Assembly (NCBI GenBank): GCA_964035545.1
Contig: CAXIUT010000141.1
Span: forward strand, 1 to 18,659
Direction of reading: 5' to 3'
Source of the DNA: Bugula neritina
Lineage: Eukaryota; Animalia; Bryozoa
DNA: 18,659 nt
Shown here piece by piece: positions 1 through 18,659 of this stretch. The translations under genes and the position numbers were made by a program. Within the stretch, counting starts at the first letter, position 1. Each line of letters starts with the position of its first letter. The notes under the pieces were generated by a model. It saw only the letters and a list, made by a program, of their open reading frames with translations, did no database searches and had not been told where the DNA came from.

Positions 1-69
1 GTGAGAGAAGTCAAAATCAAAGGATACGAACTGCACAAAGTAGTATTCGGTTAGAAGATTGAAGAGTGA
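1..69 (+). CDS. 3' end of a TLDc-domain gene (partial; gene 0 of the tandem array)
   Basis: Frame 1 reads VREVKIKGYELHKVVFGEKIEE then TGA at 67-69. Nearly identical to the ends of the genes at 2245-2313 and 5091-5159. Confidence 0.9.
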
Positions 70-189: not shown

Positions 190-2313
190 ATGAATAAAGA
201 AAAGATGAAGCCTAAAATTCAAAGTGTAAAATAATTTTATCAGAATAATTCAGATTTAAAGTATGAACATAGTCATGAGATTCATAAAGTTGAGTACAAT
301 TCACTCAAATACTATTTTACATATGCTCAAACAAATGAGTGGTTTTCGTTAAATAATGAGTGTTTGTTGTTTATTCTTCAAAGCTAAGATAACTAGCTAT
401 CAATAGGCTATACTAAATCTGTTCAAATACTTCCTTCGAGTTCAAAACCTATTCCAGTTCTTCAGGCTGTAATTCCTTTAAATAAAATAATTTAGTGTGA
501 TTTATCATATAACTGTCTTAGTATAACCTCAAGATAAGATAAAGAATGGAAATTCTACTTTTTTGGAAATAAAAACAACTAAATCGGAGACTAATGGAAT
601 CGTTTAATAAACTTACTTAAAATCAATATTTATAGTGATAATTAAATTTTTAATCTTTTGAAATCTTGTACCATGAAAAGAGTTCATCGTAAAGATATTT
701 AATTAGAAAATTGCAGCAATAAAAAAATGAATAAATAGGAATAAAATAACAATAAACAATAAAATTCAACAATGTTTTTTTTAAAACCTGTTATTAAAAC
801 AATTGAAAGATAAGGTTATGAAGTATGTGAAAAATTCATTAAAAAAATTGATTATTTTAAAGAAGAAATACAGTCAAACATTATTAATCAAAAATAAAAT
901 ATAAAATAAAACAATGATTTAGATCTTAAGGAATCTGAAAAAATGTCTTCGATGGAAGAAATTATAAAAGAGTTTCAAAATAAAATATTCTAATATGAAA
1001 AAATAGTATCTAACAAAAATAGTTAATTAGAAAAAATAAATACTCTCTGCAATAAAATAAGAAAATAAAGAGATAATTATGAAAAACTGTTAAATGCAAC
1101 TTCTTAAAATATTCAAAATAAATAAAATTAGATAAAGAAATAAAATACTATTGCGAAAGAATAAATAAAAAACAGAAAGAAATTAGAAAATTAACTCAGT
1201 TTAATTTCAAAATAATTTGAAAAAAATAAAAAGTAAAAAAGTAAATTAGAATAGAATCTTGCATAAGTAAAATAGAATTTAATTAATCTAAAATAATCTC
1301 ATAGAGAATCTATATAAAATCTATAGAGTGTTAATAATCAGTTGAAAGTAAAGAGTGAAAATATTCTTGATGAGAAGAAAAAAGTTGAATAAAAACTAGA
1401 AAGCATTTCAGGTCAACTAAAAAGTCAACAAATATCACTAGAGAAATAGATAAAGAAAAATAAATAACTAGAAACCTAGATCTCAGATAAAGAAAAGCTA
1501 CTTGAAGATTAAAAGACAAACAGTGTAAAACTATTGCAACAACAAAAAGATAAATATTAGAATTAAGTAAACAAAGTCAATAAAGAAATGAAGTAAAACA
1601 AAATCCAATACTAGTCTTAGAAGTAGCAGTTGATTGACAAGATGAGAGTACTGACTGTTGAGGTTTAGATTCTGAAATAAAGCAAAGAAGAACTCCAACT
1701 AGTCAGAAACACTCTCTCTCAGAAAGAAGAGTAGCTCTCGTACTTCAAAGCTAAGTCACAGTAGCCATCGTTTTCTCTCTTTTTCCACGCTAAAGTGCTT
1801 GCTTAGCAGACTTAGCACAAAAAGGTGATGAAAAAGTATATCGAAGGCATGAAGAAGCACAAAATAGTTTCGACTGAACTCCTATTCGCAGCCGATGCCT
1901 TGAACCCGACTTCTTTCCACAAGTACATCGACGAAATCCCCGACATAGCTTTAGTCGTGTGCACAGAGACAGGCAACTACATCGGAGGCTTCTCTGAGAG
2001 TCCTTTCCATAGCAAAGAGGCAGCTAGCAAAGGAGGCATCATCTTCTCTCTGACTCAGAAGAAAGTCTTTTCCATTCTTCCTGGAAAGAGGTCAGTAGGC
2101 TACGACCCTTTCTACCTTCTCTTCGGCAACGCCTAGATCAGACTGAAACAGAATGAGTGGAAAGTCTTTTGTAACTTTGGGATTGCTAATGGCTTTTACA
2201 ACTCTAATGGAAGTGTAGTGAATGACCTTTTGGGTGAAGGAGGTGTGAGAGAAGTCAAAATCAAAGGATACGAACTGCATAAAGTAGTATTCGGTTAGAA
2301 GATTGCAGAGTGA
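190..2313 (+). CDS. Gene 1: PH-like N-terminal domain + coiled coil + C-terminal TLDc domain, 707 aa
   Basis: ATG 190 to TGA 2311-2313 with no in-frame TGA once TAA/TAG are read as sense. TLDc motifs at ~1870-2295: ELLFAA..SFHKYID, LVVCTETGNYIGGFSESPF, GIIFSL, FGNAEIRL, IKGYELHKV. K/E-rich heptads at ~900-1740. Confidence 0.9.
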
Positions 2314-2314
2314 T
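1290..2314 (+). repeat. Direct repeat copy A (~1.02 kb; distal coiled coil + TLDc), paired with 4137-5160
   Basis: Begins at AAAATAATCTCATAGAGAATCT in both copies. About a dozen differences by eye. Offset is 2847, becoming 2846 after the missing C. Confidence 0.95.
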
Positions 2315-2458
2315 TTACAACTCTTTAGAATTATTCGACTATTTATTTTATCGTAATAAGAAATAGTAAGAATAATTATAAAAAATATAATAAATTCTTG
2401 TTGATATTTATACTTGTATAATTATTTCTTGTAAAGTTAAGCACTGAATCAAAAGAGG

Positions 2459-5159
2459 ATGAAGCCAGAAGTTCAAAGCATTAAGAAATTCTATGATAAG
2501 TATTCTTTTCTCAAGTATCCGCATTCCAGGTAAATTAAATAGGTGAAGGTTAATTCAATCAGATATTATTCAACATATGCTCATACATAATCGTGGTTTG
2601 ATGATGAGTGTTTATTAGTTTTGTTACGGAGCTAAGACAACAAATTTTCAATTGGATATGCCAAAGAGATTCATAAATTTCCCTTAATCTAAACACCTAT
2701 ACCAGTTCTTACGACCCTTATTCCATTGGAAAGGATCACTTTAAAAGGAGTTAAAAATGGATAGCTCACTTTATAATTACAAAATCATGAAGATAGACAA
2801 TGGAAATTTAGGTTTTTTGAAGTCTAAAAAATAGCTTTAGAATGGAATCAACTATTAACTTCATTGAAGTCAAATGTTTACAATAAAGATCAAATCACTT
2901 ATGTTTTACAAATATTTACAAAAAAATGTTCTTAAGTTCAAAATATTTAGAACCAAGACTATTAAAAAACTACAAAAAAGTTTAATCGTCGCATAAAAGA
3001 AGAGAAACCTCATATGATTAATTTTAGTTCTGCTTTAAATAACTTAAATTCTGAAGAATATCAAGAATTAGCTAAAACAAAAGATCTTCTAAACAAATCT
3101 GAAGAATAATCAAACGAAAAGACATAACAGATAAACAGTTTGACAGCCTCGATAAATAGTTTAAAAAAAAGACTAGAACTAAAAGATAAGTAAGTGATTG
3201 ACAAAAAAGAAAAAAATGGATAATCAGTAGATTAAAAGATGAAATTATCATCATTGGAAAAAGGTTCTAAAGAAAATGTTTAAAAATTTGAACATTTAAA
3301 AAGATAAAACCAATAATTACGATAAAAAAATGATCAAATGTAGTAGAAAATAAGATAGAATGATAAAAACTTGATTGAATTTCAGACAAGTCTTTAAAAA
3401 TAAGACAAAGAGAATATAAAAGATAAAAATACTGAATTGGAAAAATAAAATAAATCTCTCCAAGATAAAATAAATAAATTTAAGAATCAAATAAATATTA
3501 TTCAGCTCGATGCAAAATCTGAAAAGGATAAATAAATAGAAAAATATAAACAGTTATTTGAAATCTTGAAAAATAAAAATACTTAATTATCAGAAATTTA
3601 AATTCAGAAGAACTAATATGTTAATAAAAATCTTTAACTTTCAAACAAGATCTCAGAAATGGAATAAAATAATAAAAAGTTATTAATAAAATAAGAAGGA
3701 TTGAAGATTAGGTTAAAATAAATTAAGAACAGAATAATACTCTTCGTTAATAAAAAGATAACTATGAAAAGAAGATAAAATAACTCTAAGAAAATAAATC
3801 AGAAATCGAAGGTCATTTATCAAAGAAAGATGCTTAGCTAAAATAAGTAAAGATATTATATGAGTCACAATAAAAAATCAATACTGATAAAATACAAGAG
3901 ATCTAAGAAATTAAACAAAAATATTCAAGTTAATTAGATAGGCAGGACAGTTTATTGAATAAATAGATAAGTAATGCTAATTCTTTGATAACTATAAAGC
4001 AACAATAAATATAAGAATTGAAAAAAGATAAAGAAAATCTTGAAGAGTAACTTGTTTTGGAAAGATCTAAAATATCAGAACTAAAAGAAGATTATTAGAA
4101 ATCTAAAATAAATCTTTAAAATACTATTTTAAAACAAAAATAATCTCATAGAGAATCTATATAAAATCTATAGAGTGTTAATAATCAGTTGAAAGTAAAG
4201 AGTGAAAATATTCTTGATGAGAAGAAAAAAGTTGAATAAAAACTAGAAAGCATTTCAGGTCAACTAAAAAATCAACAATTATCACTAGAGAAATAGATAA
4301 AGAAAAATAAGTAACTAGAAACCTAGATCTCAGATAAAGGAAAGCTACTTGAAGATTAAAAGACAAACAATGTAAAACTATTGCAACAACAAAAAGATAA
4401 ATATTAGAATTAAGTCAATAAAATCAATAAAGAAATGAAGTAAAACAAAATCCAATACTAGTCTTAGAAGTAGCAGTTGATTGACAAGATGAGAATACTG
4501 ACTGTTGAGGTTTAGATTCTGAAATAAAGCAAAGAAGAACTCCAACTAGTCAGAAACACTCTCTCTCAGAAAGAAGAGTAGCTCTCGTACTTCAAAGCTA
4601 AGTCACAGTAGCCATCGTTTTCTCTCTTTTTCCACGCTAAAGTGCTTGCTTAGCAGACTTAGCACAAAAAGGTGATGAAAAAGTATATCGAAGGCATGAA
4701 GAAGCACAAAATAGTTTCGACTGAACTCCTATTCGCAGCCGATGCCTTGAACCCGACTTCTTTCCACAAGTACATCGACGAAATCCCGACATAGCTTTAG
4801 TCGTGTGCACAGAGACAGGCAACTACATCGGAGGCTTCTCTGAGAGTCCTTTCCATAGCAAAGAGGCAGCTAGCAAAGGAGGCATCATCTTCTCTCTGAC
4901 TCAGAAGAAAGTCTTTTCCATTCTTCCTGGAAAGAGGTCAGTAGGCTACGACCCTTTCTACCTTCTCTTCGGCAACGCCTAGATCAGACTGAAACAGAAT
5001 GAGTGGAAAGTCTTTTGTAACTTTGGGATTGCTAATGGCTTTTACAACTCTAATGGAAGTGTAGTGAATGACCTTTTGGGTGAAGGAGGTGTGAGAGAAG
5101 TCAAAATCAAAGGATACGAACTGCATAAAGTAGTATTCGGTTAAAAGATTGAAGAGTGA
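2459..5159 (+). CDS. Gene 2: PH-like + long coiled coil + TLDc, ~900 aa after correcting two 1-nt frameshifts (~3675 and ~4786)
   Basis: MKPEVQSIKKFY is homologous to the gene 1 start. The frame switches at the A run 3674-3678, and at CCC 4785-4787 where the gene 1 copy has CCCC. The 3' ~1 kb is nearly identical to gene 1. Ends at TGA 5157-5159. Confidence 0.8.
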
Positions 5160-5160
5160 T
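4137..5160 (+). repeat. Direct repeat copy B of 1290-2314
   Basis: Same sequence as copy A, also reflected in the duplicated shadow ORFs of the supplied track (1331 vs 4178, 2092 vs 4938). Confidence 0.95.
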
Positions 5161-5282
5161 GATTCAGTAGATAGTTTAAAGTATATTAATATCATTAAAA
5201 CAATAACTATCAATCTTTATTTGATAGATGTTCTTACAAGAATTATTATTAAGATAATATAATAAATTCTTACAAAATCAAA
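5091..5282 (+). repeat. Near-identical copy of 1-188 (TLDc 3' end plus the whole intergenic spacer)
   Basis: TCAGTAGATAGTTTAAAGTATATTAATATCATT...AATAAATTCTTACAAA is shared, differing by a few substitutions and small indels. Confidence 0.93.
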
Positions 5283-5285
5283 TAA

Positions 5286-6927
5286 ATGAATCAAGAGATG
5301 AGGCCTTGTGTTCAAAGTGTAAAGAAATTCTATGAAGCGAATTCAAATCTCAAGTATCAGCATTGTGAATAGATCAAATAGGTAAAGGCTAATTCATTAA
5401 AATACTATTTTACATATGCTTAAACATAGTAGTGGTTTAATAGTGAATGTCTATTGGTTTTGTTACGAACCTCAGACAACAAATTTTCAATTGGATATGC
5501 CAAAGAGTTTCATAAATTTCCTTTAATCTAATAACCTATACCATTTCTTAAATATATTATTCCTTTGAATAAAACTACCCCGAAAGGAGTTAAAAATGGA
5601 TAACTCACTTTATAATTATTGATACAAAGAGATAGATAATGGAAATTTAAGTTTTTTGGAGTATAAAAAATAGCTCTTCAATGGAATCAACTATTAACTT
5701 CATTGAAGTCAAATGTTTACAATGAAAATCAAATAACTTATATTTTACAAATCTTTACAAAAAAATGTTCTTAAGTTCAAAATATTTAGAACCAAGACTA
5801 TTAAAAAACTCTAAAGATGTCAAACAATTACAAAAAAGTAGAAAAATCTCTTAGTTCTGCTTTGAATAAGTTAAATTTTGAGGAATAATAGAAATAAGTA
5901 AATCTAGAATAAAAAATGAACTAATTGTAGAATAACAAGGCAAAAATAAACTCCAAATATAATATAAAATAAGAACAGTTATCTCAATAATTTAAAATAT
6001 TAGAAAAATAAAAGAATTAGATCTAAACTAAAAACAACTAAATAAAGACCTAAATGGTCTAAAATAATTAAAAATAGATTGAACATCAGTTAAACTAAGA
6101 CTAATAAGATAATGGAAGCATGATACTTTTAAAAATAGAATCCTAGATATTTTAATAATATCAAGAATTTGTGGCATAAGAATAATAACTTCAATTTTCA
6201 AAAGAGAAAAATCAGCTACTTCAAAAAGAAAATACGTATGAGATAAATGCTTTAAAACTAAAAAATTAAGTATAGTAATATAAAATTAATCTACAAAGAA
6301 AAGATATTGAATTAAAATAAATAAAGATTCTCTATTAATAATTAAAAAACGAAAAGGATGACAAAGTAAAGGAGATTCAAGATATTTTCCTTTTGAAATA
6401 ACATTAATCAAATCTCCATATTCATAATTTGAAAAATGAGATCAGTTTTCAACAAAAACAATTCGAATCATTAAAAATTAGTAAAGAAAATGTTGATTAA
6501 GAACTTGTTTCAGAAAAAAAAAAAAATATATAACTTAAACAATTTTATTAAAATTCCTTATCAAATCTTAAAAGTATCAATAGAAAACAAGAATATCTCA
6601 ATTTAAAAGGAAAAAGTACAATAATTACTTAATAATATTTTGGGTTAATTAAATTGTCATCAAAGGTAACTTTCAAAAGAAAAAGAAAAAAAATCTGAAA
6701 CAAAAGTTTAAGTATTAAGGAAAGGTGATTTTGAAGAAGAAGATTAAACTAAATTTTATAAGAAAAATCAAAAATAAAATTCAATTTAAAATATTGAAAA
6801 TATTGAAAAAATGATTAAAAAGTCTGAAATTTTGGAGAAATAATTAGCTGATCAAAGCTAAGTTCTTAAATCAATGAAAAATCAGCTAAAGTTGACTATG
6901 AGCAGAAATCCAGAAAAGAATGAATGA
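5286..6927 (+). CDS. Gene 3: PH-like + coiled coil paralog lacking TLDc; frameshift at ~6582, possibly decaying
   Basis: MNQEMRPCVQSVKKFY, with an N-terminus very close to gene 2. Frame 3 stays open to TGA 6696-6698, but homology to gene 1 (KKKVEEKLESISGQL vs KEKVQELLNNILGEL) continues in frame 1 from ~6583 to TGA 6925-6927. Confidence 0.72.
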
Positions 6928-6997
6928 ATGATGAATCTTGCATAAATAAGTATTAATATTTTGGTTTGATTTTTGTAAGAATGTATTATATTTTATC

Positions 6998-8136
6998 ATG
7001 ACGGACACTCAAGATCAGGACCAAAAGGAAAAAGTTCAATCGTACAACATTCCAAACAATCATGAAAATAAGATTATCTTTAATTCTGGAGGACCAAATG
7101 GTGGAAAATATGCTGTTAAAAACCAAGAAGTTATACATAAAAAGAAGAACATTTTGGAACCAATACCTGAAGTTAGTTTGACCAACTATAATCTCAATGG
7201 CTTTAACAGTACTTCTATTGATACTGTAGTTGCTAATTCTGTTTAAATAGTTAGCTTATTTAAAAAACTCAAAAATAATGTTAATGATCGTTCATCCGAT
7301 TCACCAGAAGATAGAGAGCTGAAATAGATTTTTTATTCTCTAGAAGAGAAAATTAATGAGAAACCAGTGTTTATGAGCAATGAAGATGCTGCTTCAGAGG
7401 AAGATAAAGTCAGTAGTTGCAATTCTCTATCTAGGATGGTGAAATAAGAGAAAATTTAGACTAAAGATCAGAGATTTAATGCTTATTAAACAAGACTCAG
7501 AGAGGCACTTTTTAAGACTTATGACAACTTGATGAAAGCTAATGCAAAAATAAAATCTTTGCAATCGAAAAATGGAAAAAATTCTAGAACTATTTAACCA
7601 TTAATTGAGGAAATTAACAACCTCAGAGCTAAAGTAATCATCTTAAGAAATAGAACCGTTAGTTGAAAAAAGAATTAAAAATAAAATAAGAGGAAGCTTT
7701 AAAGCAGGTTGAAAGTTTTTTCAATCAAGAACAAGATTTTTATACGAAAAATGATAAAAGAAAGACAACATAAAAAGAAGAAAGTCCAAAGAACGAGCTT
7801 GAACAGAAATATCAAAGAAATAGTGTTGAAGTAAGATTTACTCCTGAATAAATTCTTGATAAAAGAAATTCAGTTGATACAGCAGGAAGTCCAAACTAAA
7901 GTGACAATTCTTCGAGATTTAATGGCTACCGAAACTCAGCATCTTAAAGTTAAAGTTTATCTTATAATTTAAATGACTTAGAGGATCGAAGAAGCGCATA
8001 AATTGAATGGGAAGTAACAAAGCGAAAATAATTTTTGGATAGAGAATCAAAATAAAGCAAAAGTAGTTCTTCATATGTTAGCGCTCATTATAAAGCATTT
8101 TAAGAGGATTATAAAAACTAAGAGATTAGAAAATGA
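6998..8136 (+). CDS. Gene 4: hypothetical protein with central coiled coil and Ser-rich, probably disordered tail, ~379 aa (one 1-nt frameshift at ~7632)
   Basis: ATG 6998 in frame 2. Adding one A at AAA 7631-7633 joins it to frame 1 (NLRAKSNHLKKENRELKKELK), which runs to TGA 8134-8136. No similarity to the PH-like family was seen. Confidence 0.7.
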
Positions 8137-8295
8137 TTTGAAGACATCAATTAAATTACAAAGGTATTTATTAATAAAATAAAATAAAATAAAATAATAT
8201 TGATCATTTACTATCAAAATCTTTTTGATTAATATTTTTTAGATTGTATTTGATAAAATTAGCTCCAAATTTTATTAAGAAGTATAAAAAAAATC

Positions 8296-9729
8296 ATGAG
8301 TAGATTATAAGATAGATTTGTGACTGAAAAGTTACCCAATATGAAAAGATCATCAATAAATGGTGATAGTAGGAGTTATGTCAAGTGTTTTGAGGTCAAT
8401 GGGAAAAGAGATTTCTATTCTTTTGTCTAAACAACTGACGGAAAACCTAGTAATATTAAAAAGATCAATCTAGAACAATATCAAGAATTAATATTTCAAG
8501 AATCATCTTTGGAGATCCATCCTAACTAACATTAGTTTTATCTAAAACAGATCGAAGGTCTTTAAATTGAGAAAAGGATTTATCAAAACAAGATAACTAC
8601 TATCTAACTAAAACATAGTTAAGCAATTTAGGGCTATTAATTTCTTAAATTGTGTCATAGAGATTGTGAAGATAAAGATTTGGAGAGAAAACAATAGATA
8701 TTGAGATTGTAAAAATAAAATATTAATCTTTTAGATCGATGTGATAGATTATAGAGACATATTGAGAGATATGACAAAGAAAAATTACTTTAGAAATAAG
8801 AGATTCCTTGTTTATTATTGTTGTTTAAGACAATAATAAAGAGATAGGAATAAAATATCTTTCTTAAATTATCTGATATAGAGAAAAAATTTAATGATTT
8901 TGATAAAAATATAGCTGGATTGCTCATTCTAGAATAAGAAAATACAAAAGATCAGCTCAATACTAAAGATCTTGTTTAATAAAAATTGAAAGAATTATCC
9001 CAGGTAAAAAGTTAGTTCTAAAATTTGAATAAATAAGCTAATTATTAAAGAGAACGTTATCCAAAACACTAAGAATTGATACATTAGTAATAAAGAAGTT
9101 AAGTTAGATAAAAACTATAAAATAGTTTTAATTTGGTTGAAAAGAATATAAATAGCATAAATCTAAAGATTATAAAACTTAAAGAACAATGTGAATAATG
9201 TTCATTAAAATTGAAAAAATATGTTTAATAATTTGACTAAAAGAAATAAATGGGCAAATTAATATAAATCTAACTATTTGAAAAACTAGATTAATTAAAA
9301 AGTCTCAGAATAATGTACTATAAGGTTCTTTAATAAGCATAATAATCTTAAAATTCAAAAGATAGTTTTAAATCAATCTTAGAAGAAATGCCTAAAGTAA
9401 AATGGAGAAAGAAAAATACTTCTAAAGTTACAATTAAAAATATATAGAATACTCAACATCTAATTATCAAAGGATTAAACAGAAAAAAACTATTCTTTAA
9501 AAAATAATAAAATAAAATTGATATATCAAGTCAAAGTTAGCTTGAAGTAGATGAAGAAGGAAAATTAAAAGAAAAATCACTTTCTAATAAAAATTAAAAT
9601 CTATAGATAAATATAAGAAATTTTGTTTAGATTAGAAATAATTAAGAGAACTCTAATGAAAATTCTGAAAGTGGAAGTTAAAGTTTCTCTTAATACCGTA
9701 GAGCAGTATAGGATGATTTTCCTTTTTGA
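8296..9729 (+). CDS. Gene 5: hypothetical coiled-coil protein, 477 aa; N-terminal ~100 aa beta-rich, possibly a divergent PH-like fold
   Basis: Uninterrupted frame from ATG 8296 to TGA 9727-9729. N-terminal YVKCFEVNGKRDFYSFVET..KKINLEQY..LEI..FYLK, then K/E-rich helices. Confidence 0.75.
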
Positions 9730-10107
9730 TTTTTCTTAATCTTCTTTTGCTATTTTTGGAAAGATATAAAAGAAAGTAATCTAAATATTTTTTTTAATTA
9801 ATAAGACTTTTAATGTTTAATTAATCATTTTAAAGAAATAAATCATAAATTTAACTACATTAGTCCGTGAAAGGTAATTATTAAATTCAACTATCAAGAA
9901 AATAAACTTTGAAAAAAAAGTATTTTAAAAATATTGATCCAAAAAATGTATAAATCAATATTTTTTGATAATTAAGAACAATTGAACACACATATTCTTG
10001 TTTTTTCAGAATAAAGTGAAATATCTTATATTATTGACTAATCAAATTAACATTTTTTATATTTTTCTTGTTCAAAAGATAGTTTATAAAAATAAAGTAT
10101 CAATAGT

Positions 10108-12060
10108 ATGGGAGGGAATTTTTCAAAGACAAGAAATCCATCATATTTAGAGTCTAATATTCGAAATTTATTAGTAAAAAGTAGTCGTAAAAATCATTTA
10201 AATAATGACTAGAATCTAGATGGAAATAAATATTTTGCATAAATATAGAAAAAATAAAGGCAATAGTGGATCTCCTGTTAATTAATGCTTTTTTAGAATA
10301 AATAATCATACTAAATTGGATATACATTTTAAACAAAAAATATTTAGATCATTTAAAATTTTATTTTTGATCAAAGTATATCTCTCAGTAAAATAAGTAA
10401 AACATTAATTAATGGAAATCATCTTATCTTTTATCTATAAAATTAGAGAGATAATAAATGGTAATTTCGATTTAATGGACCTAACTAGATAATTAATAAT
10501 TGGAATCAGCTTATTATTTAATTAAAAAATGATTAACTTTGGAAAAAATCATATTCTTAGTCAAAATATCGATAAGGATCATAAAAAGATATAATTTTCA
10601 GAAAGAATAAAGGTTATTTCAGATAGAATAATAATAGATATGAGCATGAGAGGATATAAGTACATAATGATGAAGATTAAAAAATCAAAATATAGAAATA
10701 AATTGAAGAGAATATAAAAAACTAAGAAATATTGATATAAAATGAAATTTAGCTGAAAAGTTTATCAAATAAGATCTAAAAAAATAAAAGACGTATAAAA
10801 AAATTGAAATAGTTTATGTTATTGCTTAAAACTGGATAAAATAAAGAAAAAGAATAAATATCATAGTTATAACAGTACGATAGATAGTTAAAAATCATAT
10901 TTTAGAAGTAATGTGTATAATTATAAGAATAAAACTTTAATATTTTATTGAAAAAATAATAAATATAATAATCAATATAATAGTAGATACTAATTAAACC
11001 AAGAGTTATTAAATAATTTTCTTTGTTAAAGGATTATTCTCATTCTAAATTTTAAAAGAGTTAATTTAGATAGTCAATTGAACTTTCGACTATCGATGTT
11101 AAAGTACAACTGATATCTTAATAAATTATTATTTTAAAGATTTAAAGAACAAAGACAATCAGATAATTAAAATAAAAAATACAATAAAAAACCTTATTAA
11201 AAAACTATCTTTCTTAACAACTAGTTTTATAATATAAAGGTAAAGTTTTTCGAAATAATATTTAGCTAAAATCTCTTTGCATTCATACATAAAAATTAAA
11301 TTTTAGACAAAGAAAGGCTTAAATTTGGGAAATATAGTAATTAAACAGTGATAGATATAAAGAAGACCCGATATCTTGTTAAATTGGAGTTGCTATTATG
11401 CCATGTGGTCATTATTTTTCAAGAAATTCAATGGTTTGTTTGATAAAATCAATATGTGATAGTCAAAAAATATCTATCAGATGTCCGATGGAAAAGGATA
11501 AAAACGTAATTTGTAATTACTAATGGAGATATCAATAATGTCTGCTTGTTTCTGGATTTGATAAAACATAATTCAGTTTAATAAAATAAAAATTGAGTGA
11601 AAATTGGATAAAAAATAACATAAAAAAGTGTCCATTTTGTTTAGAATCAGTTACAAATATAGGTTTAACTACAAAAAGAGTAAAATGCATAGGATGTAAT
11701 TCAGTAGATTTTTGTTTTTCTTGTTTGCAGCCATGGAAGAACAAAGATAATATATCTTGTGGAAGTAGTATTTGTTCAGCTAAAGAAGAGCTAGTAATGA
11801 ACTCCCCTTTTAATAGAGAATTTATATTGAGGGAAAAAGGTACAAATAAGACTATAAGAGTGAAAACACCATAGTATAGAGCATGTCCACGTTGTGGATA
11901 GATTATACAAAATTATCAGAATTGTAAGCATACTAGATGTTTTTCATGTCATAGTTATAGTTTTTGTTTTATTTGTCTTAGGTAGTATAAGAATGGAAAA
12001 TGGCCTTGTGGGTCTTATAACTAGTATTGTGGATTTGTAGCTCCTAACCAAATAAATTGA
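10108..12060 (+). CDS. Gene 6: PH-like + coiled coil + ubiquitin-like domain + RBR (RING1-like/IBR/RING2) E3 ubiquitin ligase, 650 aa (704 aa if the in-frame ATG at 9946 is used)
   Basis: Uninterrupted frame to TGA 12058-12060. UBL-like at ~11092-11310 (IDVKVQLISEEIIILKIERTKTIRELKEKIQEK..LVLEYKGKVF). Degenerate RING1 DPISC..MPCGH..RCP..C. IBR CPFC..CIGC..FCFSC..W..C..C. RING2 RACPRCG..NCKHTRCFSC..FCFICL, with the putative catalytic Cys at 11923-11925. Confidence 0.88.
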
Positions 12061-12367
12061 TTGATTTATTCAAGTAAATATAGTCTTTTCTATTTATTAT
12101 TGTTATTTTAATTAGAATGTATGATATTTTACTTGTAAAAGAGTGGGAAAGGTTAGTATAAAGGAATTTTAGACAGAATATAGAAGTTCTTGATTAGAAA
12201 ATATTCTTACGAAATATAGAGAACAATTTTTATTTATAAATTAATTTATAATGATATCGAAATAACAAATTAGGAGAATAAATATCAATGAATTAAGATA
12301 AATAGAATATCATTGATTTTATATCTTAATTATTTAACAAAATCATGATATATTATAAGTAATAAGT

Positions 12368-14082
12368 ATGAAAAATTAAAAAAGCCAATAACTAGCTTTT
12401 TAGAACTTAAGATCAAATGACATTTTTCTATCTTTGAAAGGTAGAAATTATTCATCTTTAACGAAAGAATATGAAGAGATTACTTATTATCCTAAAATTG
12501 CAGGAAATACATATTTTGTGATTTAAGTAAAAACATTAAAGTAGCACTAGGTAATAGGGCAAATGATTTTTATGAAAAATTAAAATTAGAAGTACAAAGT
12601 GGGAAAGTATGAAGGTATTATTCTACTAGACAAAATTGCAGATGATTTAGATCAAGGTAAATTTATATAAATAGATCAAATAAGTAATAGTTCGATCAAA
12701 GATAATATTCTTACACTTTAGTTAAATAATTGTGAAGATAAGATATGGTAATTTAAATATAGTGAGTAATTTATTCATTATATTCCTTTGCTAATAGATA
12801 CATTTAAAGAAAATATAAATTGCGAAAATGAGATTTAGGAGTTTATAAAATCCTTTCCAATTAATAGTCTTTAGTTTTAAACTTAAAAAATATACTAGAA
12901 TAAGAATAAGAAAATCCTGAAAAATAAAGATGAGAAATAAGGAAAAAAAAATTATTCAAAAAAGATCATCCTTCTTTATTGATGATGATTTGTTAAAGAA
13001 TAAAAAAAAATTTAGAGTATGTATAAAAAGATTAAAATTTTCTAATGAATTAAAATTAGCCATTTGAAAATAATATGTTATTTAAAAATAATCAAAATAA
13101 TTAAAATGGTATTATTTATAATATTGCTTTGATTGAAAAATTGATAACCTAAGCGATAAAAAAGGTTGAAATACAAGTATTAAATATATAATTTGATAAT
13201 TTAAATGTCAAATTAAATGGGTTAAATAGTGAACATGAATAAATAAGGAAAGAAAAAAGGTTAATTAAAGGTTCGATTTAAAATAGATAGCACTAAATAG
13301 AAGAAAAGAAAAACAAAGTCAGAGAACTTGTTTAAAAAATTAATGATGTTGAAAAACGTTTACATCAACAATCATAGTTCATGAATAATTTTTAGAGTTA
13401 TTGTTAAAAATAGGAGGAAAATCCAAATAAAAAGCTTAGATAATCTGATTAATAGTTAAATTTTAAATTAAAACAAAACTTCAATAAATGGTAAATATCA
13501 AGAAAAAATCTTATTCAAGATAAATAAAAAAATGAAGAAGAAATCAGCTCACTATCTAAATCATTATAAATAGAACTATAAAGATTTAGATCTTTAATAA
13601 TCCGTTTTTAATAAATTTAGTTATAAATACAAGAAACTTAGTAAAAAATAATTAAATTTAAAAGTAAATATTGCTTAAACATTAAAAATACTTAAAAAAT
13701 AAAAAAATTTATTAAAAATCTTAACTCATTGGTCAAATAAAATTAATAAATATTCTAATTTTAGATATCTGGCTGTAAGAAAAAGATGAATACTATGGAT
13801 AATATTGAAAAAAAGTATTTTGAAAAATATAAATAAAGAAATTTTTCAAATATGTCAGACATATCATAAATAAAGAAATCTTAGAGATTTTAGTAAGACT
13901 CATAAAGAAAATAATTGCAATAAATATAAAAAATCATTGATCTTTCAGGTAAATCGTTTGTAAATCAAAAATAAGCCTCTAAAAGTGAACTGAATAAAGA
14001 TTAAAAAGAGTAACAATCTTCATTTGGAAAAGATTTATACGAGTTAATCAGTAATGTTTCGAACAATAGTTCTTAGTAATGA
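12368..14082 (+). CDS. Gene 7: PH-like + coiled coil protein with no recognisable C-terminal domain, ~571 aa (one 1-nt frameshift at ~12945)
   Basis: ATG 12368. Family motif IEIDQISNSSIKDNILTLELNNCEDKIWEFKY. The frame changes at the A9 run 12943-12951, then frame 1 is open to TGA 14080-14082. Confidence 0.72.
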
Positions 14083-14315
14083 GGAATGATTCTCATGTTA
14101 AATATCCTTTTAAATTGGACTTTGTTTTATATTCTTTTGAGTATTTATTTTAAAAATTTATATATTTGTTTTTCCGAAATTAACAAGAATATAAATTATA
14201 AAGAATCAAGTAAGTAACATCTGAAGAGATTAGTTAATAATTTTAACAATAAAATATCTTGAGTTTGATTTATAAAATAAAAAGTATCAAATTTAATTTA
14301 TAATAAGTACGATCT

Positions 14316-16349
14316 ATGGACACGTAAAAATTAAGACAAATAGCTATAACAGCCAGATAACACGGACGTTTATTCTAAGATATTAGACAAATATATCAAA
14401 GGTTTTAAAAAGAATATATGGTCTAGTCGACTGTTTGTTAGGCAAATGATGATGTTATCATAAAATAGTTAACTATTAATTTCCATACACATGCTAAAGT
14501 GGAACACATTTGGCAGTTTAAATATGGTCAACTACTATTATTTGAAAATCAAAGAAAAAATTATCAGCTAGGTTTTACTTGTGGAGCATAATAATATCCT
14601 ATTCTTGAAAAAATTGAAAAAATTGATTTTCAATGGATTATTTCTTTAGATCAAATCAAAAATAACTACATAGAAGGTAATAAACTGATCTTATAGCTTA
14701 AAAATATTAAAAATGATAAGTTCAAATTGATTTTTTCTGATTATTTGCTTTTAAAGAGTTGGAATAAAGTTATAAATTGTTTCATAACGTTAGAAGATAT
14801 TAAAATAAATTTAAGAAAGAAGAATTTATAAAGCTGCAATGATATTAGTCTCTCTATTGGCTATACTTCTTCAGGAAAAAGTTCAATACTTAATTATTTT
14901 TTGAACTAGAATCAAAAAATTTTATCAAAAATAGCTAGATATTCAAGAGCAATTGCGATGAAAAGATTATTAATAAAAGAAAGCTTAATTCATTTTCATG
15001 ATCAAATTTCTCATGGAATTAAAAATAAAAATAAATAAAAAGAAATTTAGAAATTTATCTAAAAAATGAAACTATGGGAAAAAGAAAAGCCATAAAAATA
15101 ATAAAAATAATTATAAATTAAAAAATCTGATTCAGAATTAATGAAAGAATTATAAAATAATATTTTTTTAGTCAGAGAAGATTATTAAAGAATTGCTTTT
15201 TAAATATAAAAAAACTTAAAATAAGTTTTTAATAACTCAAATTAAATAAACAATCTATAAAATTTAATCTAAGAATCAATAATAAATGCAATAAAACTTA
15301 AAAAAGAATCAAGTATTTAATAAAAAGGTCTTATTTCTTCTATTTAGTCTATTCATTCTAAATCAGCAAAAGGGATGAAATATTTGTTATGGTTTGGTAT
15401 GAGTCAAACTGGTAAATCAAGTTCGATAAAACTTTTAACATCTGACTAATCGATTGTTTGTGGATAGTATGGAGTAGGAAATCCTACTACTTCATAAGTT
15501 AAAATTTATTAAGATTTGATACCAAAATTATCTTAGAAGTATTCTCATATTGATACTATTGGTCTTGGAGATTATCGTTCAAACTATAGTGAAAAAGAAA
15601 TAAGAAATCATATTGAAATAGAAATTATAAAAAATGTTTATTTTAAAAAGTTAGATTCTTTATCTGCTATTATTATTACCTAATCCCTTAGAAGTGATAC
15701 TGTTCAATTGAAACAGATTTTCGAGCAAATTAGAAATATACTTGGTTATTTTCCATCTAAATCGATAGTTATTTTAGGTACTAAAAAGAATGACTGTAGT
15801 AAAATATTAGCTGAGAAAAAAATAACATAAATAATGAAAACTTTAGATTAGTATGGCATTCCACAACAGCAATATATTTAATTTTATACTCCATGTCCTG
15901 AAATTGATTTTCTTTTGAACTAAATTAACCCTTTGCAGTTTTAATAGCTTGAAAAAAGAATAAAAAATTGTTAAAAAGTTCCAATTGATTCTTTCTTGAA
16001 AAAACAATAAAAAATTAAGGCCAGAGCAAATCAACTTGTTCAAGAAAAGACTATTATCGAAACTCAATATATTGAAAGATAGTAAGTAAGATACAAAACA
16101 TAAAAAAGAACTAGAACAATATTAATACCTTATAAACAGAGTTCAAGAGGATTTGCTGGCATATTTGGAAGAGGACAGACATAATATAGAGAATATCATG
16201 AGACTTAAGATGTTTAGGTTCCTTATGTTGAAAAAATTAAAATACCTATAAAAGTACCTAAACCTCCTTCATATGATTAATGCTATCATCTTGCACTTGA
16301 GTAATTTGAAAAGAAATAGAATCTTCCAAAGGAGTACCAACCAAAATGA
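14316..16349 (+). CDS. Gene 8: PH-like + helical linker + AIG1/GIMAP-like P-loop GTPase with C-terminal hairpin, 677 aa
   Basis: Uninterrupted frame to TGA 16347-16349. G1 GMSQTGKS (15396-15419), G2 Thr in NPTTS, G3 DTIGLGD (15552 on), G4-like IVILGTKKND (~15780). Start uncertain because the frame is also open upstream to ATG 14079. Confidence 0.85.
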
Positions 16350-16956
16350 TTATCCCATCAATAAATAGCTTTAATAGAAAATTTGTTTTATGGTATTTAT
16401 TTATAGATAAAAAGTTATTTGAATTTCTTTTTATTATTAAATTTTTACTTGATATGATATCTTATCAAGTTGATATTTACGATAAGTTATCTTTTATACA
16501 TTTTGTATTTAGTTTGGTAAATATTGTTAGTCAAGTTTCTTCTTTGATAGTTTTATTTTATTTTCTAAAAGTTATGACTAAATGATTTTTAAATGATCAA
16601 TATAATATTATATTCAATAGTCATCTGAATAAAACGTATACTTGCAACATTAAAAAATATTTAACTAATATTGTCAATATCAAATAATTCGTTTTGATTC
16701 AATAAAGTAAATAGAAATTTACATTACGAATATGATGAATGATTATTAATTGGTTAAAATGAGTTATTTTGTTGATTATTGTCAATATAGTAATAAAAAT
16801 GTATTAATATTTATCTATATTCTTATTAAAATATGATAACATCTTGCAACTTCTTATTCGTATGATTTCATTTATTAAGTACAATGTTTGAGTAGCAATC
16901 TTTCTCACTTTGGCAAGATAGATCACAAAAATAATGCGTCTATCTGTGAAAGTTCC

Positions 16957-18486
16957 ATGCAGAAGATCAACAAGATCTCTGTTGGTTCTGTGGATTACTA
17001 TATGTCTTATGCACAGATAGAAGTCGAACTGTATTTGGTTGATTGTCAGCTTGTCCTCTATCGTAACTCATAAAATCAAAACTAAATAGGATATTCTGTT
17101 GAAACGAGAGGGTTTCCTTCTGTGTCTGATGTTCATCCAATTATCAAAGAAAACATAATTTTGAGACAAATTGTTAAAAATTAGATACAAAGGGAATATC
17201 TCATTCTATACTTTTCTGATTGTAGATTTAAGACTTGGAAGTTGAAGTTTATAGGAGTTTAGGAGATAAAATATCAATGGAACTAGTTGATAGCATGTAT
17301 GAAAGATAAAAGAAGATAGCATCTATCTTTGCTGATGTTAAATCCTTAAAGATAAATATATGAATAGTTTAATCCTTCAAAGAATCATAATTTAGACGAA
17401 GAATTTAAACAGAATGTCAATAATTTACTTGACAAAGAATATTATTTGTAACATAAGTTAAGTAATTTATAAAGAGAAACTGCATTTATACAAAAAGATA
17501 TTAATATGAACTTGAACTATTCGAGAAATGTAGGAGCATATGAATAAATATTATAGAAATTGCATAAAAGTTCTTCAGATAAATGGTTTATCAGATAGAA
17601 GATGACTTAATAAAAAAAATAAATTAAAAAAATAAAAGATAAAATAAAAACTTATGATTAAAGATTTGATTCAATCAGAACTAAACTCTAAAATTGTTCA
17701 AAATACGTACTAAGTCTTTAATATTCATTAGTAAATTATGATGCTGTTTTATACTAAGAAGAATAAGAAGAAGATTAGATATCGAGTTTAGAGTTATTAT
17801 CGAAATTTAAATAAAATATTACTCTAATTAAAAAAAAGATCAATAGAGTATAAAAAATAAAGAGAGCACATAGATAATTATAGATAAAAAATTATTAATA
17901 AACAAGAGAAAGTGATAAATAAAAGTTATTGACTGAATAAAGAAAGTTTATTTAATTGACAAAATAAAAAGAACGTTATAAAAAAGTCATAAGTGAGACA
18001 AAGGTTGAATTGGCTTAATATGAATAATAATAAAAGTTTCGAAATAAATATAGAAAAGCGATATTACTAGAAAACTCACATAAATAAAAAAGAAAATTCA
18101 TGATGAGAAGCAAAAAGACATTAAAAAGAAGATTTTTATAGAATAAAAGTAAATAATTCTTATTTAAGAAAATAAGAAAGAAAAAGAAAATAAAGAATGG
18201 TTGATAAATCAAACATAGATCTATCTCATTAAAATGAATTAAAAGATAGATAGCAAAGTTCCCTTTAGCTCAAAGGTTGTCTATCTCAAGATGAACATTC
18301 TGAAAGTCAATAAAATATTTCCCATCAGTTATCAGGTAACTATAGTTATAGTGTTATTTATAGAAAGACAGAACTAAGTCAAAATTAAAAGAAGAGAGTT
18401 TGAATGAACAAGTCGATAGTAGTTCCATGATAATAAAAGACAGCAAATTCTAATAGTATGTTGATGAGGCCAAAGAAGGTTTATGA
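16957..18486 (+). CDS. Gene 9 (telomere-proximal): PH-like + coiled coil, ~510 aa after correcting three 1-nt frameshifts (~18033, ~18243, ~18389)
   Basis: Family motifs YYMSYAQ, NEIGYS, YLILYF..KTWKLKFIGV..YQWNELI. Frame 1 is formally open 16837-18204. The more protein-like reading needs one extra A at each of three TAAAAG sites and ends at TGA 18484-18486. Start uncertain (out-of-frame ATG at 16884). Confidence 0.68.
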
Positions 18487-18575: not shown

Positions 18576-18659
18576 GGGGTTGGGGTTGGGGTTGGGGTTG
18601 GGGTTGGGGTTGGGGTTGGGGTTGGGGTTGGGGTTGGGGTTGGGTTGGGTTGGGTTGGG
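18576..18659 (+). repeat. Telomere, (GGGGTT)n, Tetrahymena-type repeat, G-rich strand running 5'->3' to the end
   Basis: 11 perfect GGGGTT units, then three GGGTT and a GGG at the sequence end. Confidence 0.97.

Follow-up and report, generated by a model that had tools for sequence, protein, structure and literature searches.

Results

A row of genes beside a telomere

We analyzed an 18,659-nt stretch of DNA (the window; positions 1 to 18,659 of contig CAXIUT010000141.1, Bugula neritina assembly GCA_964035545.1) that ends in a ciliate macronuclear telomere and carries a row of genes built from one shared N-terminal domain (the head), a coiled-coil stalk, and different C-terminal modules (the tails). 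The telomere occupies the + strand end, with (GGGGTT)11 from 18576 followed by degenerate GGGTT units, and begins ~370 nt past the stop codon of the last gene, g9. Long TGA-free open reading frames (ORFs) fill the window almost exclusively on the + strand, separated by intergenic gaps of 70-600 nt, and all genes point toward the telomere. GC content is about 0.19-0.34 over the window. A first-pass annotation, made from the letters alone, had described the array as subtelomeric, and the telomere repeat with seven head genes upstream of it bears this out. The array also extends past the left edge of the window, where the end of a further gene (g0) is 97% identical to 2245-2315 at the end of g1. 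Because its last 22 codons are nearly identical to those of g1, we read g0 as a TLDc gene. The genes and features are as follows (aa, amino acids; HMM, hidden Markov model).

1..69, + strand: g0, final 22 codons and stop codon of an upstream TLDc gene
190..2313, + strand: g1, an intact single TGA-only ORF of 707 aa with head, coiled coil, and TLDc
295..642, + strand: head of g1, from the HMM alignment
1795..2292, + strand: TLDc domain of g1, from the profile match, with the fold taken from a relative
2459..5159, + strand: g2, with head (2549-2887), coiled coil, and TLDc (4642-5138)
5286..6927, + strand: g3, with head (5391-5729) and coiled coil, tail-less
6998..8136, + strand: g4, an interspersed gene without the head
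8296..9729, + strand: g5, an interspersed gene without the head
9946 or 10108 to 12060, + strand: g6, with head (10219-10545), short coiled coil, and RBR-like array (11377-12030)
about 11092-11310, + strand: ubiquitin-like stretch of g6, recognized by eye, upstream of the RBR-like array
12368..14082, + strand: g7, with head (12500-12829) and coiled coil, tail-less
14079 or 14316 to 16349, + strand: g8, with head (14481-14825), coiled coil, and GTPase domain (about 15378-15878)
14859-14882, + strand: orphan P-loop of g8, between head and coiled coil
16957..18204, + strand: g9, with head (16984-17322) and coiled coil, no recognized tail
18576..18659, + strand: telomere, (GGGGTT)11 and degenerate GGGTT units

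The shared head and the stalk behind it

The head measures ~110-120 aa and is homologous across seven + strand genes (g1, g2, g3, g6, g7, g8, and g9). In pairwise phmmer comparisons, g1, g2, g3, and g9 match one another at E 1e-12 to 1e-80, and an HMM built from these four heads recovers g6 at 1e-13, g8 at 1.2e-7, and g7 at 4.3e-6 (Z=10,000 in both cases), with alignments near the N-terminus that cover essentially all 128 model positions. For g1 and g2, the head HMM gives E-values of 8e-57 and 1e-64. The consensus keeps the motifs YY-x-T-Y-A, C-L-L-V-L-L, S-I-G-Y, I-P-L-x-x-I, L-I-L-E-L, W-K-F-K-F-F, and E-W-N-x-L-L. A six-frame HMM scan of the window found no eighth copy, and g4 and g5 gave no match to the head HMM and are thus not members.

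The sequence is AT-rich and of low complexity, and an alternative explanation is that only g1-g3 are related, that the matches of g6-g8 are compositional, and that the tail-less or frame-broken genes are pseudogenes or errors. However, 1000 composition-preserving shuffles of each weak member (g6, g7, and g8) reached at most 10.7 bits, against 55.5 bits for the real head of g6, 35.9 for g8, and 28.5 for g7, and the alignments span the whole domain with the same conserved motifs. The pairwise ratio of nonsynonymous to synonymous substitution rates (dN/dS) over the heads is 0.34-0.47, below the value of 1, which suggests moderate purifying selection on domains that are yet fast-evolving. The first-pass annotation had claimed one domain, with these motifs, common to seven members of a fast-evolving paralog family, and had named an HMM alignment of the N-terminal domains and a dN/dS analysis as checks; all seven align significantly, and the domain, the motifs, and the pace of change all hold up.

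No Pfam family was matched by stop-free head pieces, in agreement with the first-pass annotation, which did not recognize a described family. The annotation had called the head PH-like, and the head's pattern, strand-like blocks followed by a Trp-bearing helix with W-N-x-L-L, would be compatible with a PH/GRAM-like fold, a superfold that we define as a seven-stranded beta sandwich with a C-terminal helix as its cap.

Heptad-like segments follow every head, as judged by a crude ad hoc heptad score. These stalks vary in length between members and make up the bulk of each protein. Behind them stand unrelated modules, as had been described from the sequence: TLDc on g0, g1, and g2, an RBR-like array on g6, and GTPase motifs on g8, while g3, g7, and g9 (three of the seven members) end in coiled coil only. 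Of the two head-less neighbors, g5 is also coiled-coil-rich, and a g4 piece had no match in Pfam.

This layout could also belong to structural or scaffold coiled-coil proteins, in which the head oligomerizes or binds the cytoskeleton of cortical or contractile structures and the tails are incidental recombination fusions that share no common site. The dominance of the long heptad-like stalks, the three tail-less members, the coiled-coil-rich g5, and the return of nothing PH-like by any search all speak for such proteins. By contrast, the heads are under purifying selection, their strands and Trp-bearing helix would fit PH/GRAM, and the combination of head, stalk, and TLDc is kept across at least three lineages (see below). 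We regard a purely structural role as unlikely.

Reading of TAA and TAG

Within the window, TGA behaves as the sole stop codon, and TAA and TAG together account for 9.1% of the codons in its ORFs. The window's paralogs alone did not separate glutamine from glutamate, with 29 E vs. 28 Q opposite TAA/TAG. We therefore turned to homologs. For this code test, 80 metagenomic loci encoding relatives of the TLDc tail were combined with further loci, giving an alignment of 77 distinct TLDc rows (window plus fetched loci) in which TAA/TAG were masked. The masked codons concentrate in glutamate columns: column 152 holds 29 TAA/TAG with 45 E, 2 D, and 0 Q; column 208 holds 10 with 63 E; and column 201 holds 26 with 41 E, whereas the Q-dominated column 211 holds only 4. 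The window's single TAA/TAG within the conserved part of TLDc (between FGNA and IRLK) faces E in five of six farther homologs and D in the sixth. An apparent Q in P0152 at that site proved to be a gene-caller artifact, as the contig DNA has TAG. Translation table 6 (glutamine) was dropped for glutamate after this test. The alignment thus indicates that TAA/TAG are read as glutamate (table 30) in this organism and its relatives, the code that the first-pass annotation had recommended. Peritrichs likewise read TAA/TAG as glutamate. Local translations made after the test used glutamate, and the head statistics stand with Q, E, or X at these positions. Database searches with window proteins used stop-free pieces only, as whole domains contain in-frame TAA/TAG.

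The tails and their relatives

The TLDc module of g1 scores 223.7 bits against the TLDc profile. Among 1.84 billion proteins, the stop-free g1 TLDc piece matches 152 at E up to 0.001, including multi-TLDc proteins that score 159-411 bits on PF07534. Most of the 152 are short, having been split at TAA/TAG by gene callers. Relatives 36-53% identical exceed the PF07534 cut-off (P0004 at 37.0, P0014 at 32.7, P0005 at 24.8, and P0003 at 24.6 bits). The AlphaFold model of a closer relative, P0002 (53-55% identical to the g1 tail), has a predicted local distance difference test score (pLDDT) of 93.2, and its Foldseek ranks 1-15 are all TLDc domains (probability 1.00; template modeling score, TM, 0.60-0.67), after which the matches fall off a cliff to E >0.1. 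These structures include TBC1D24, Oxr1 on V1, mEAK7 on V-ATPase, NCOA7, and OXR2. Neither the TLDc piece nor the TLDc profile retrieved any match from PDB by sequence. On the profile scores and the modeled fold of relatives, we consider the TLDc assignment, first proposed from the letters alone, secure for g1, g2, and, by its near-identical end, g0.

Two close relatives of this TLDc subtype, at 42% and 51% identity, are encoded on bacterial contigs (the P0014 contig and L007, 10001-10636), where their neighbors are Rho, CNNM, SecD, EF-Ts, S2, and SRP54. L007 has a GC content of 0.31, and P0014 combines a hydrophobic N-terminus, signal-peptide-like by eye, with a coiled coil. These genes may represent host-to-symbiont gene capture.

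The tail of g6 shows IBR-like spacing (C562-x2-C565 ... C581-x2-C584-x5-C590-x2-C593) followed by RING2-like spacing (C647-x2-C650-x9-C660-x-H662-x2-C665), with C660 at the catalytic position. Pieces of g6 match IBR_1 at 3.5e-4 (20.8 bits vs. a cut-off of 27) and zf-RING_UBOX at 3e-3, both below cut-off, and the best PDB match is the RING2 domain of ARIH1 (E 7e-4). An RBR-type E3 ligase is the likely identity of this tail. The first-pass annotation had called it a ubiquitin-like domain joined to an RBR ligase. The spacing, the catalytic-position Cys, and the ARIH1 match support the ligase, whereas RING1 does not have its CxxC pairs, and the ubiquitin-like stretch was assigned by eye. Likewise, g6 is similar to the Ariadne and Parkin RBR ligases in the ubiquitin-like stretch (by eye), in IBR/RING2 spacing, and in the catalytic-position Cys, and unlike them in its RING1 without CxxC pairs and in the sub-cut-off Pfam scores of its pieces. 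To our knowledge, no RBR ligase has been described with such an N-terminal head and coiled coil. From its likely start at 10108, g6 encodes MGGNFSK (10108-10128), which fits the N-myristoylation motif MGxxxS and is unique among the members; this motif would add a second membrane anchor to the RBR member.

Two P-loops are present in g8, at aa 261 and aa 440. The latter provides a G1 motif (GMSQTGKS), and G3 follows as DTIG at aa 492, while a scan of g8 for G4 as [NT]KxD found none. Stop-free pieces of the GTPase had no Pfam match and returned only noise from PDB. Among named Atlas embedding clusters, AIG1 comes closest (0.80), a lead only. By its motifs, the tail of g8 would be a P-loop GTPase. 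It resembles AIG1/GIMAP proteins in G1 (GxxxxGKS), G3 (DxxG), and an AIG1-like layout seen by eye, and differs from them in having no canonical G4 found and no HMM or PDB match on pieces. Of the earlier claim of an AIG1/GIMAP-like GTPase, the GTPase part keeps its G1 and G3 motifs, and the AIG1 class, drawn from the motifs and the 0.80 embedding, is a weak lead.

Exchange between heads and tails

DNA self-matches pair 1268-2971 with 4117-5810 and 1-345 with 5091-5438, defining a tandem unit of about 2.85 kb. Over the distal stalk and TLDc, g1 and g2 are 97-100% identical, and 1668-2268 is essentially identical between them. Yet the head of g2 is 78% identical to that of g3 and only 43% identical to that of g1. 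Because head and tail similarities conflict in this way, g2 combines a g3-like head with a g1-like tail. The TLDc module has a GC content at third codon positions (GC3) of 0.53, whereas the head and stalk encoded with it reach 0.23 and the other tails 0.15-0.19. The relatives L021 and L011 are without a GC3 step at TLDc. The TLDc module may thus have a history of its own, having been grafted or homogenized by GC-biased conversion among copies. That the tails are interchangeable, as the first reading of the sequence had it, finds support in both the discordant similarities and the GC3 break. In overall composition, the TLDc modules of g1 and g2 (1630-2313 and 4480-5159) have a GC content of 0.43, and the nearest environmental relatives of the tail, L001 and L002, are also GC-richer.

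Frame breaks and assembly errors

Single-nucleotide indels occur in the assembly, and g3, g4, and g7 change frame, both of which would be expected if the array were decaying or artifactual. We checked the reading frames against contigs of four public short-read runs over 2400-8399. The frame of g2 is broken by two 1-nt deletions in the assembly, after 3706 and after 4784. An additional A after 3706 is present at full depth in X1 and X4, the runs covering this position, and an additional C after 4784 is present in contigs of all four runs, at full depth except in X2 (about half). The deletion at 4784 is in no contig of any run. Each insertion restores the frame exactly, giving one ORF of about 900 codons, although contigs over 4784 could partly derive from other TLDc copies. 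The breaks in g2 are therefore deletion errors of the assembly. With bases lacking at 3706 and 4784, gene models elsewhere in this genome should be expected to contain deletion-type errors as well. We had considered g2 as a pseudogene, and this was rejected once both breaks vanished in the short-read contigs.

The other breaks differ in kind. That of g7 falls inside an A9 run (12943-12951) and is probably an assembly error of the kind seen in g2, here at a homopolymer. At the g3 break, an X1 contig that is 2% diverged over 6111-8165 carries a -1, a +1, and a 14-nt insertion at 6521-6578 (net +14) that restores the frame, while X4 matches the window. The X1 version could be an allelic, paralogous, or alternatively processed macronuclear form. 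In g4, the frame changes at 7634-7653, and the short-read contigs are free of indels there. If spliced out, the 20 nt of this interval (GT...AG, length 2 mod 3) would leave the two frames of g4 cleanly joined. The interval is a candidate tiny intron, the alternatives being a real frameshift or a short g4 ending at TGA 7664-7666.

Together with the shuffle control, the whole-domain alignments, and the selection estimate, the absence of the g2 breaks from short-read contigs and the existence of environmental homologs speak against a decaying or artifactual array. We consider this explanation largely refuted and very improbable.

Gene boundaries leave some latitude. An ATGA overlap at 14079-14082 joins the stop codon of g7 to the first ATG of the g8 ORF, and the first ~30 codons of the longer g8 ORF resemble T-rich spacer, so g8 may start at 14316. 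Beyond the TGA of g9 at 18204, protein-like ORFs in two other frames reach 18486 (region 18107-18486). In view of the indel errors, these ORFs may belong to an extension of g9 beyond its annotated end or to a tenth small gene beside the telomere.

Distribution beyond the window

Searched with the head HMM, environmental contigs that use the same code showed head, stalk, and TLDc together in two further ciliate lineages. On L021 and L024, an ORF of 709 codons places the head at aa 116-226 (E 3e-5), ahead of a stalk and TLDc. On L010 and L011, the ORF is 624-625 codons long, the head occupies aa 50-172 (E 3-4e-3), and a stalk and TLDc follow. Here the head gene lies directly downstream of another TLDc gene, the pair spanning about 5900-8560 in L010 and about 4900-7539 in L011. 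Because L010 and L011 have two TLDc genes in tandem, the tandem habit is older than the genome of the window. TLDc genes of the L003 group have a different small N-terminal domain at the position of the head. Aligned to the window head with hhalign, it reaches 56% probability and E 1e-4 over 85 columns, which is suggestive only of relatedness.

A metagenome scan with a 50-aa head piece gave no match, and a head-piece profile searched against 5.8 billion proteins recovered only two fragments, both from the L010/L011 organism. Most contigs that yielded the TLDc subtype read TAA/TAG as glutamate. Judged by these searches, the family is lineage-restricted. The presence of head, stalk, and TLDc in at least three lineages argues for a functional coupling of head and tail.

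Discussion

The window holds part of what the sequence comparisons mark as a lineage-specific modular expansion built around TLDc. Our preferred reading, to which we give a probability of roughly 0.6, is that this is a lineage-restricted modular multigene family in which the head serves as a shared address and the stalk carries alternative tails that act at one site. Tandem duplication and exchange within the repetitive stalk, through recombination or gene conversion, enlarge and reshuffle the array, so that heads and tails differ in history. The head would be a common localization or partner-binding module, the stalk a dimerizing spacer, and the tails alternative activities delivered to the shared site. 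By analogy with Oxr1/Ncoa7, the TLDc members would bind and regulate V-ATPase on an acidifying membrane, e.g., that of a phagosome or contractile vacuole, and the RBR and GTPase members would add ubiquitylation and GTP-dependent switching at that location. Members without a tail could associate with tailed ones by way of the stalk.

Among known systems, Oxr1/Ncoa7 is a closer analogue than IFI44, as it combines a PH-like GRAM head with a TLDc tail (PMC12146697). These proteins bind phosphoinositides through an N-terminal GRAM domain, Rabs through their middle region, and V-ATPase through the C-terminal TLDc (PMC12146697). The family described here similarly has a small beta-rich N-terminal domain, a long linker, and a C-terminal TLDc (PMC12146697, PMC5614904), and the predicted fold of its TLDc subfamily matches Oxr1 and NCOA7 structures at TM 0.61-0.67. 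By contrast, it is without LysM, its linker is a long coiled coil, the same head also occurs on non-TLDc tails, and no similarity in sequence between the head and GRAM or PH was detectable. Its TLDc is only 9-16% identical to solved TLDc domains. IFI44 is an example of how a single system can unite TLDc and GTPase modules (PMC5614904), but in the family the two sit on separate paralogs that share a head rather than in one protein. Lineage-specific amplification of TLDc genes has precedents among ciliates in Paramecium bursaria (PMC7702705) and Tetrahymena utriculariae (PMC11834939), where counts of the Pfam TLD domain were linked to oxidative stress. Neither study describes a shared head, alternative tails, or a chromosome-end position.

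Several observations weigh against our preferred reading. With 12 stop-free head pieces and E up to 1 or 10, Pfam returned nothing PH-like; the AlphaFold model of a related L003-type head piece is all-beta, with a pLDDT of 54 that makes it not usable; and Atlas embeddings of head pieces fall into generic beta-sandwich clusters with low recognition or give nothing. A 106-aa stop-free piece of the g1 TLDc reaches 22.9 bits on PF07534 (E 9e-5), below the cut-off of 24.5 because only part of the domain was scanned. RING1 of g6 is degenerate, with a single Cys where CxxC pairs are expected and both pairs missing. The RBR and GTPase pieces gave no word-sharing candidates in very weak searches for relatives. 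Head plus RBR and head plus GTPase were seen solely in the window, and these fusions could be recent, even non-functional. The frame of g3 changes from f2 to f0 near 6520-6600 in the window. Finally, a search of the run index for RNA from this organism found none.

A defense role has to be weighed against the same evidence. The first-pass annotation had envisaged a food-vacuole or cell-autonomous defense toolkit with tail-less members as decoys or scaffolds. In such a toolkit, the head would deliver TLDc, RBR, and GIMAP-like effectors to food vacuoles or to compartments that hold pathogens, and the family would diversify at chromosome ends under host-pathogen conflict. The tail types have immune relatives in animals (the distant TLDc protein IFI44, PMC5614904, and the AIG1 look-alike), the tandem array adjoins a telomere, its tails are shuffled and converted, the family is lineage-restricted, and the TLDc subtype also occurs on bacterial contigs, which may be those of symbionts or pathogens. 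However, the dN/dS of the heads (0.34-0.47) gives no sign of positive selection at that resolution, the TLDc expansions of other ciliates have been interpreted as adaptation to oxidative stress instead of defense (PMC7702705, PMC11834939), and the AIG1 assignment is weak. We find such a toolkit unlikely. We would be similarly hesitant about the bolder proposal that the head is a new targeting domain of a ciliate organelle-surveillance or immune-like system, joined through ongoing recombination at chromosome ends to V-ATPase-binding, ubiquitin-ligase, and GTPase effectors as a protist counterpart of interferon-type effector families of animals such as IFI44, GIMAP, and RBR ligases, and consider it unlikely.

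TLDc proteins are emerging as V-ATPase regulators, and how they are directed to particular membranes is an open question. In this family, one unannotated head is joined within 18 kb to TLDc, an RBR-like ligase, and a putative GTPase, and the DNA itself records recombination between heads and tails, adding a case of domain shuffling at the end of a macronuclear chromosome. Should the head prove only structural, the array would be an ordinary lineage-specific expansion. If, as we favor, it is a membrane or partner address, the family would amount to a natural experiment in effector swapping and would offer a way to study how filter-feeding ciliates regulate phagosomes or contractile vacuoles.

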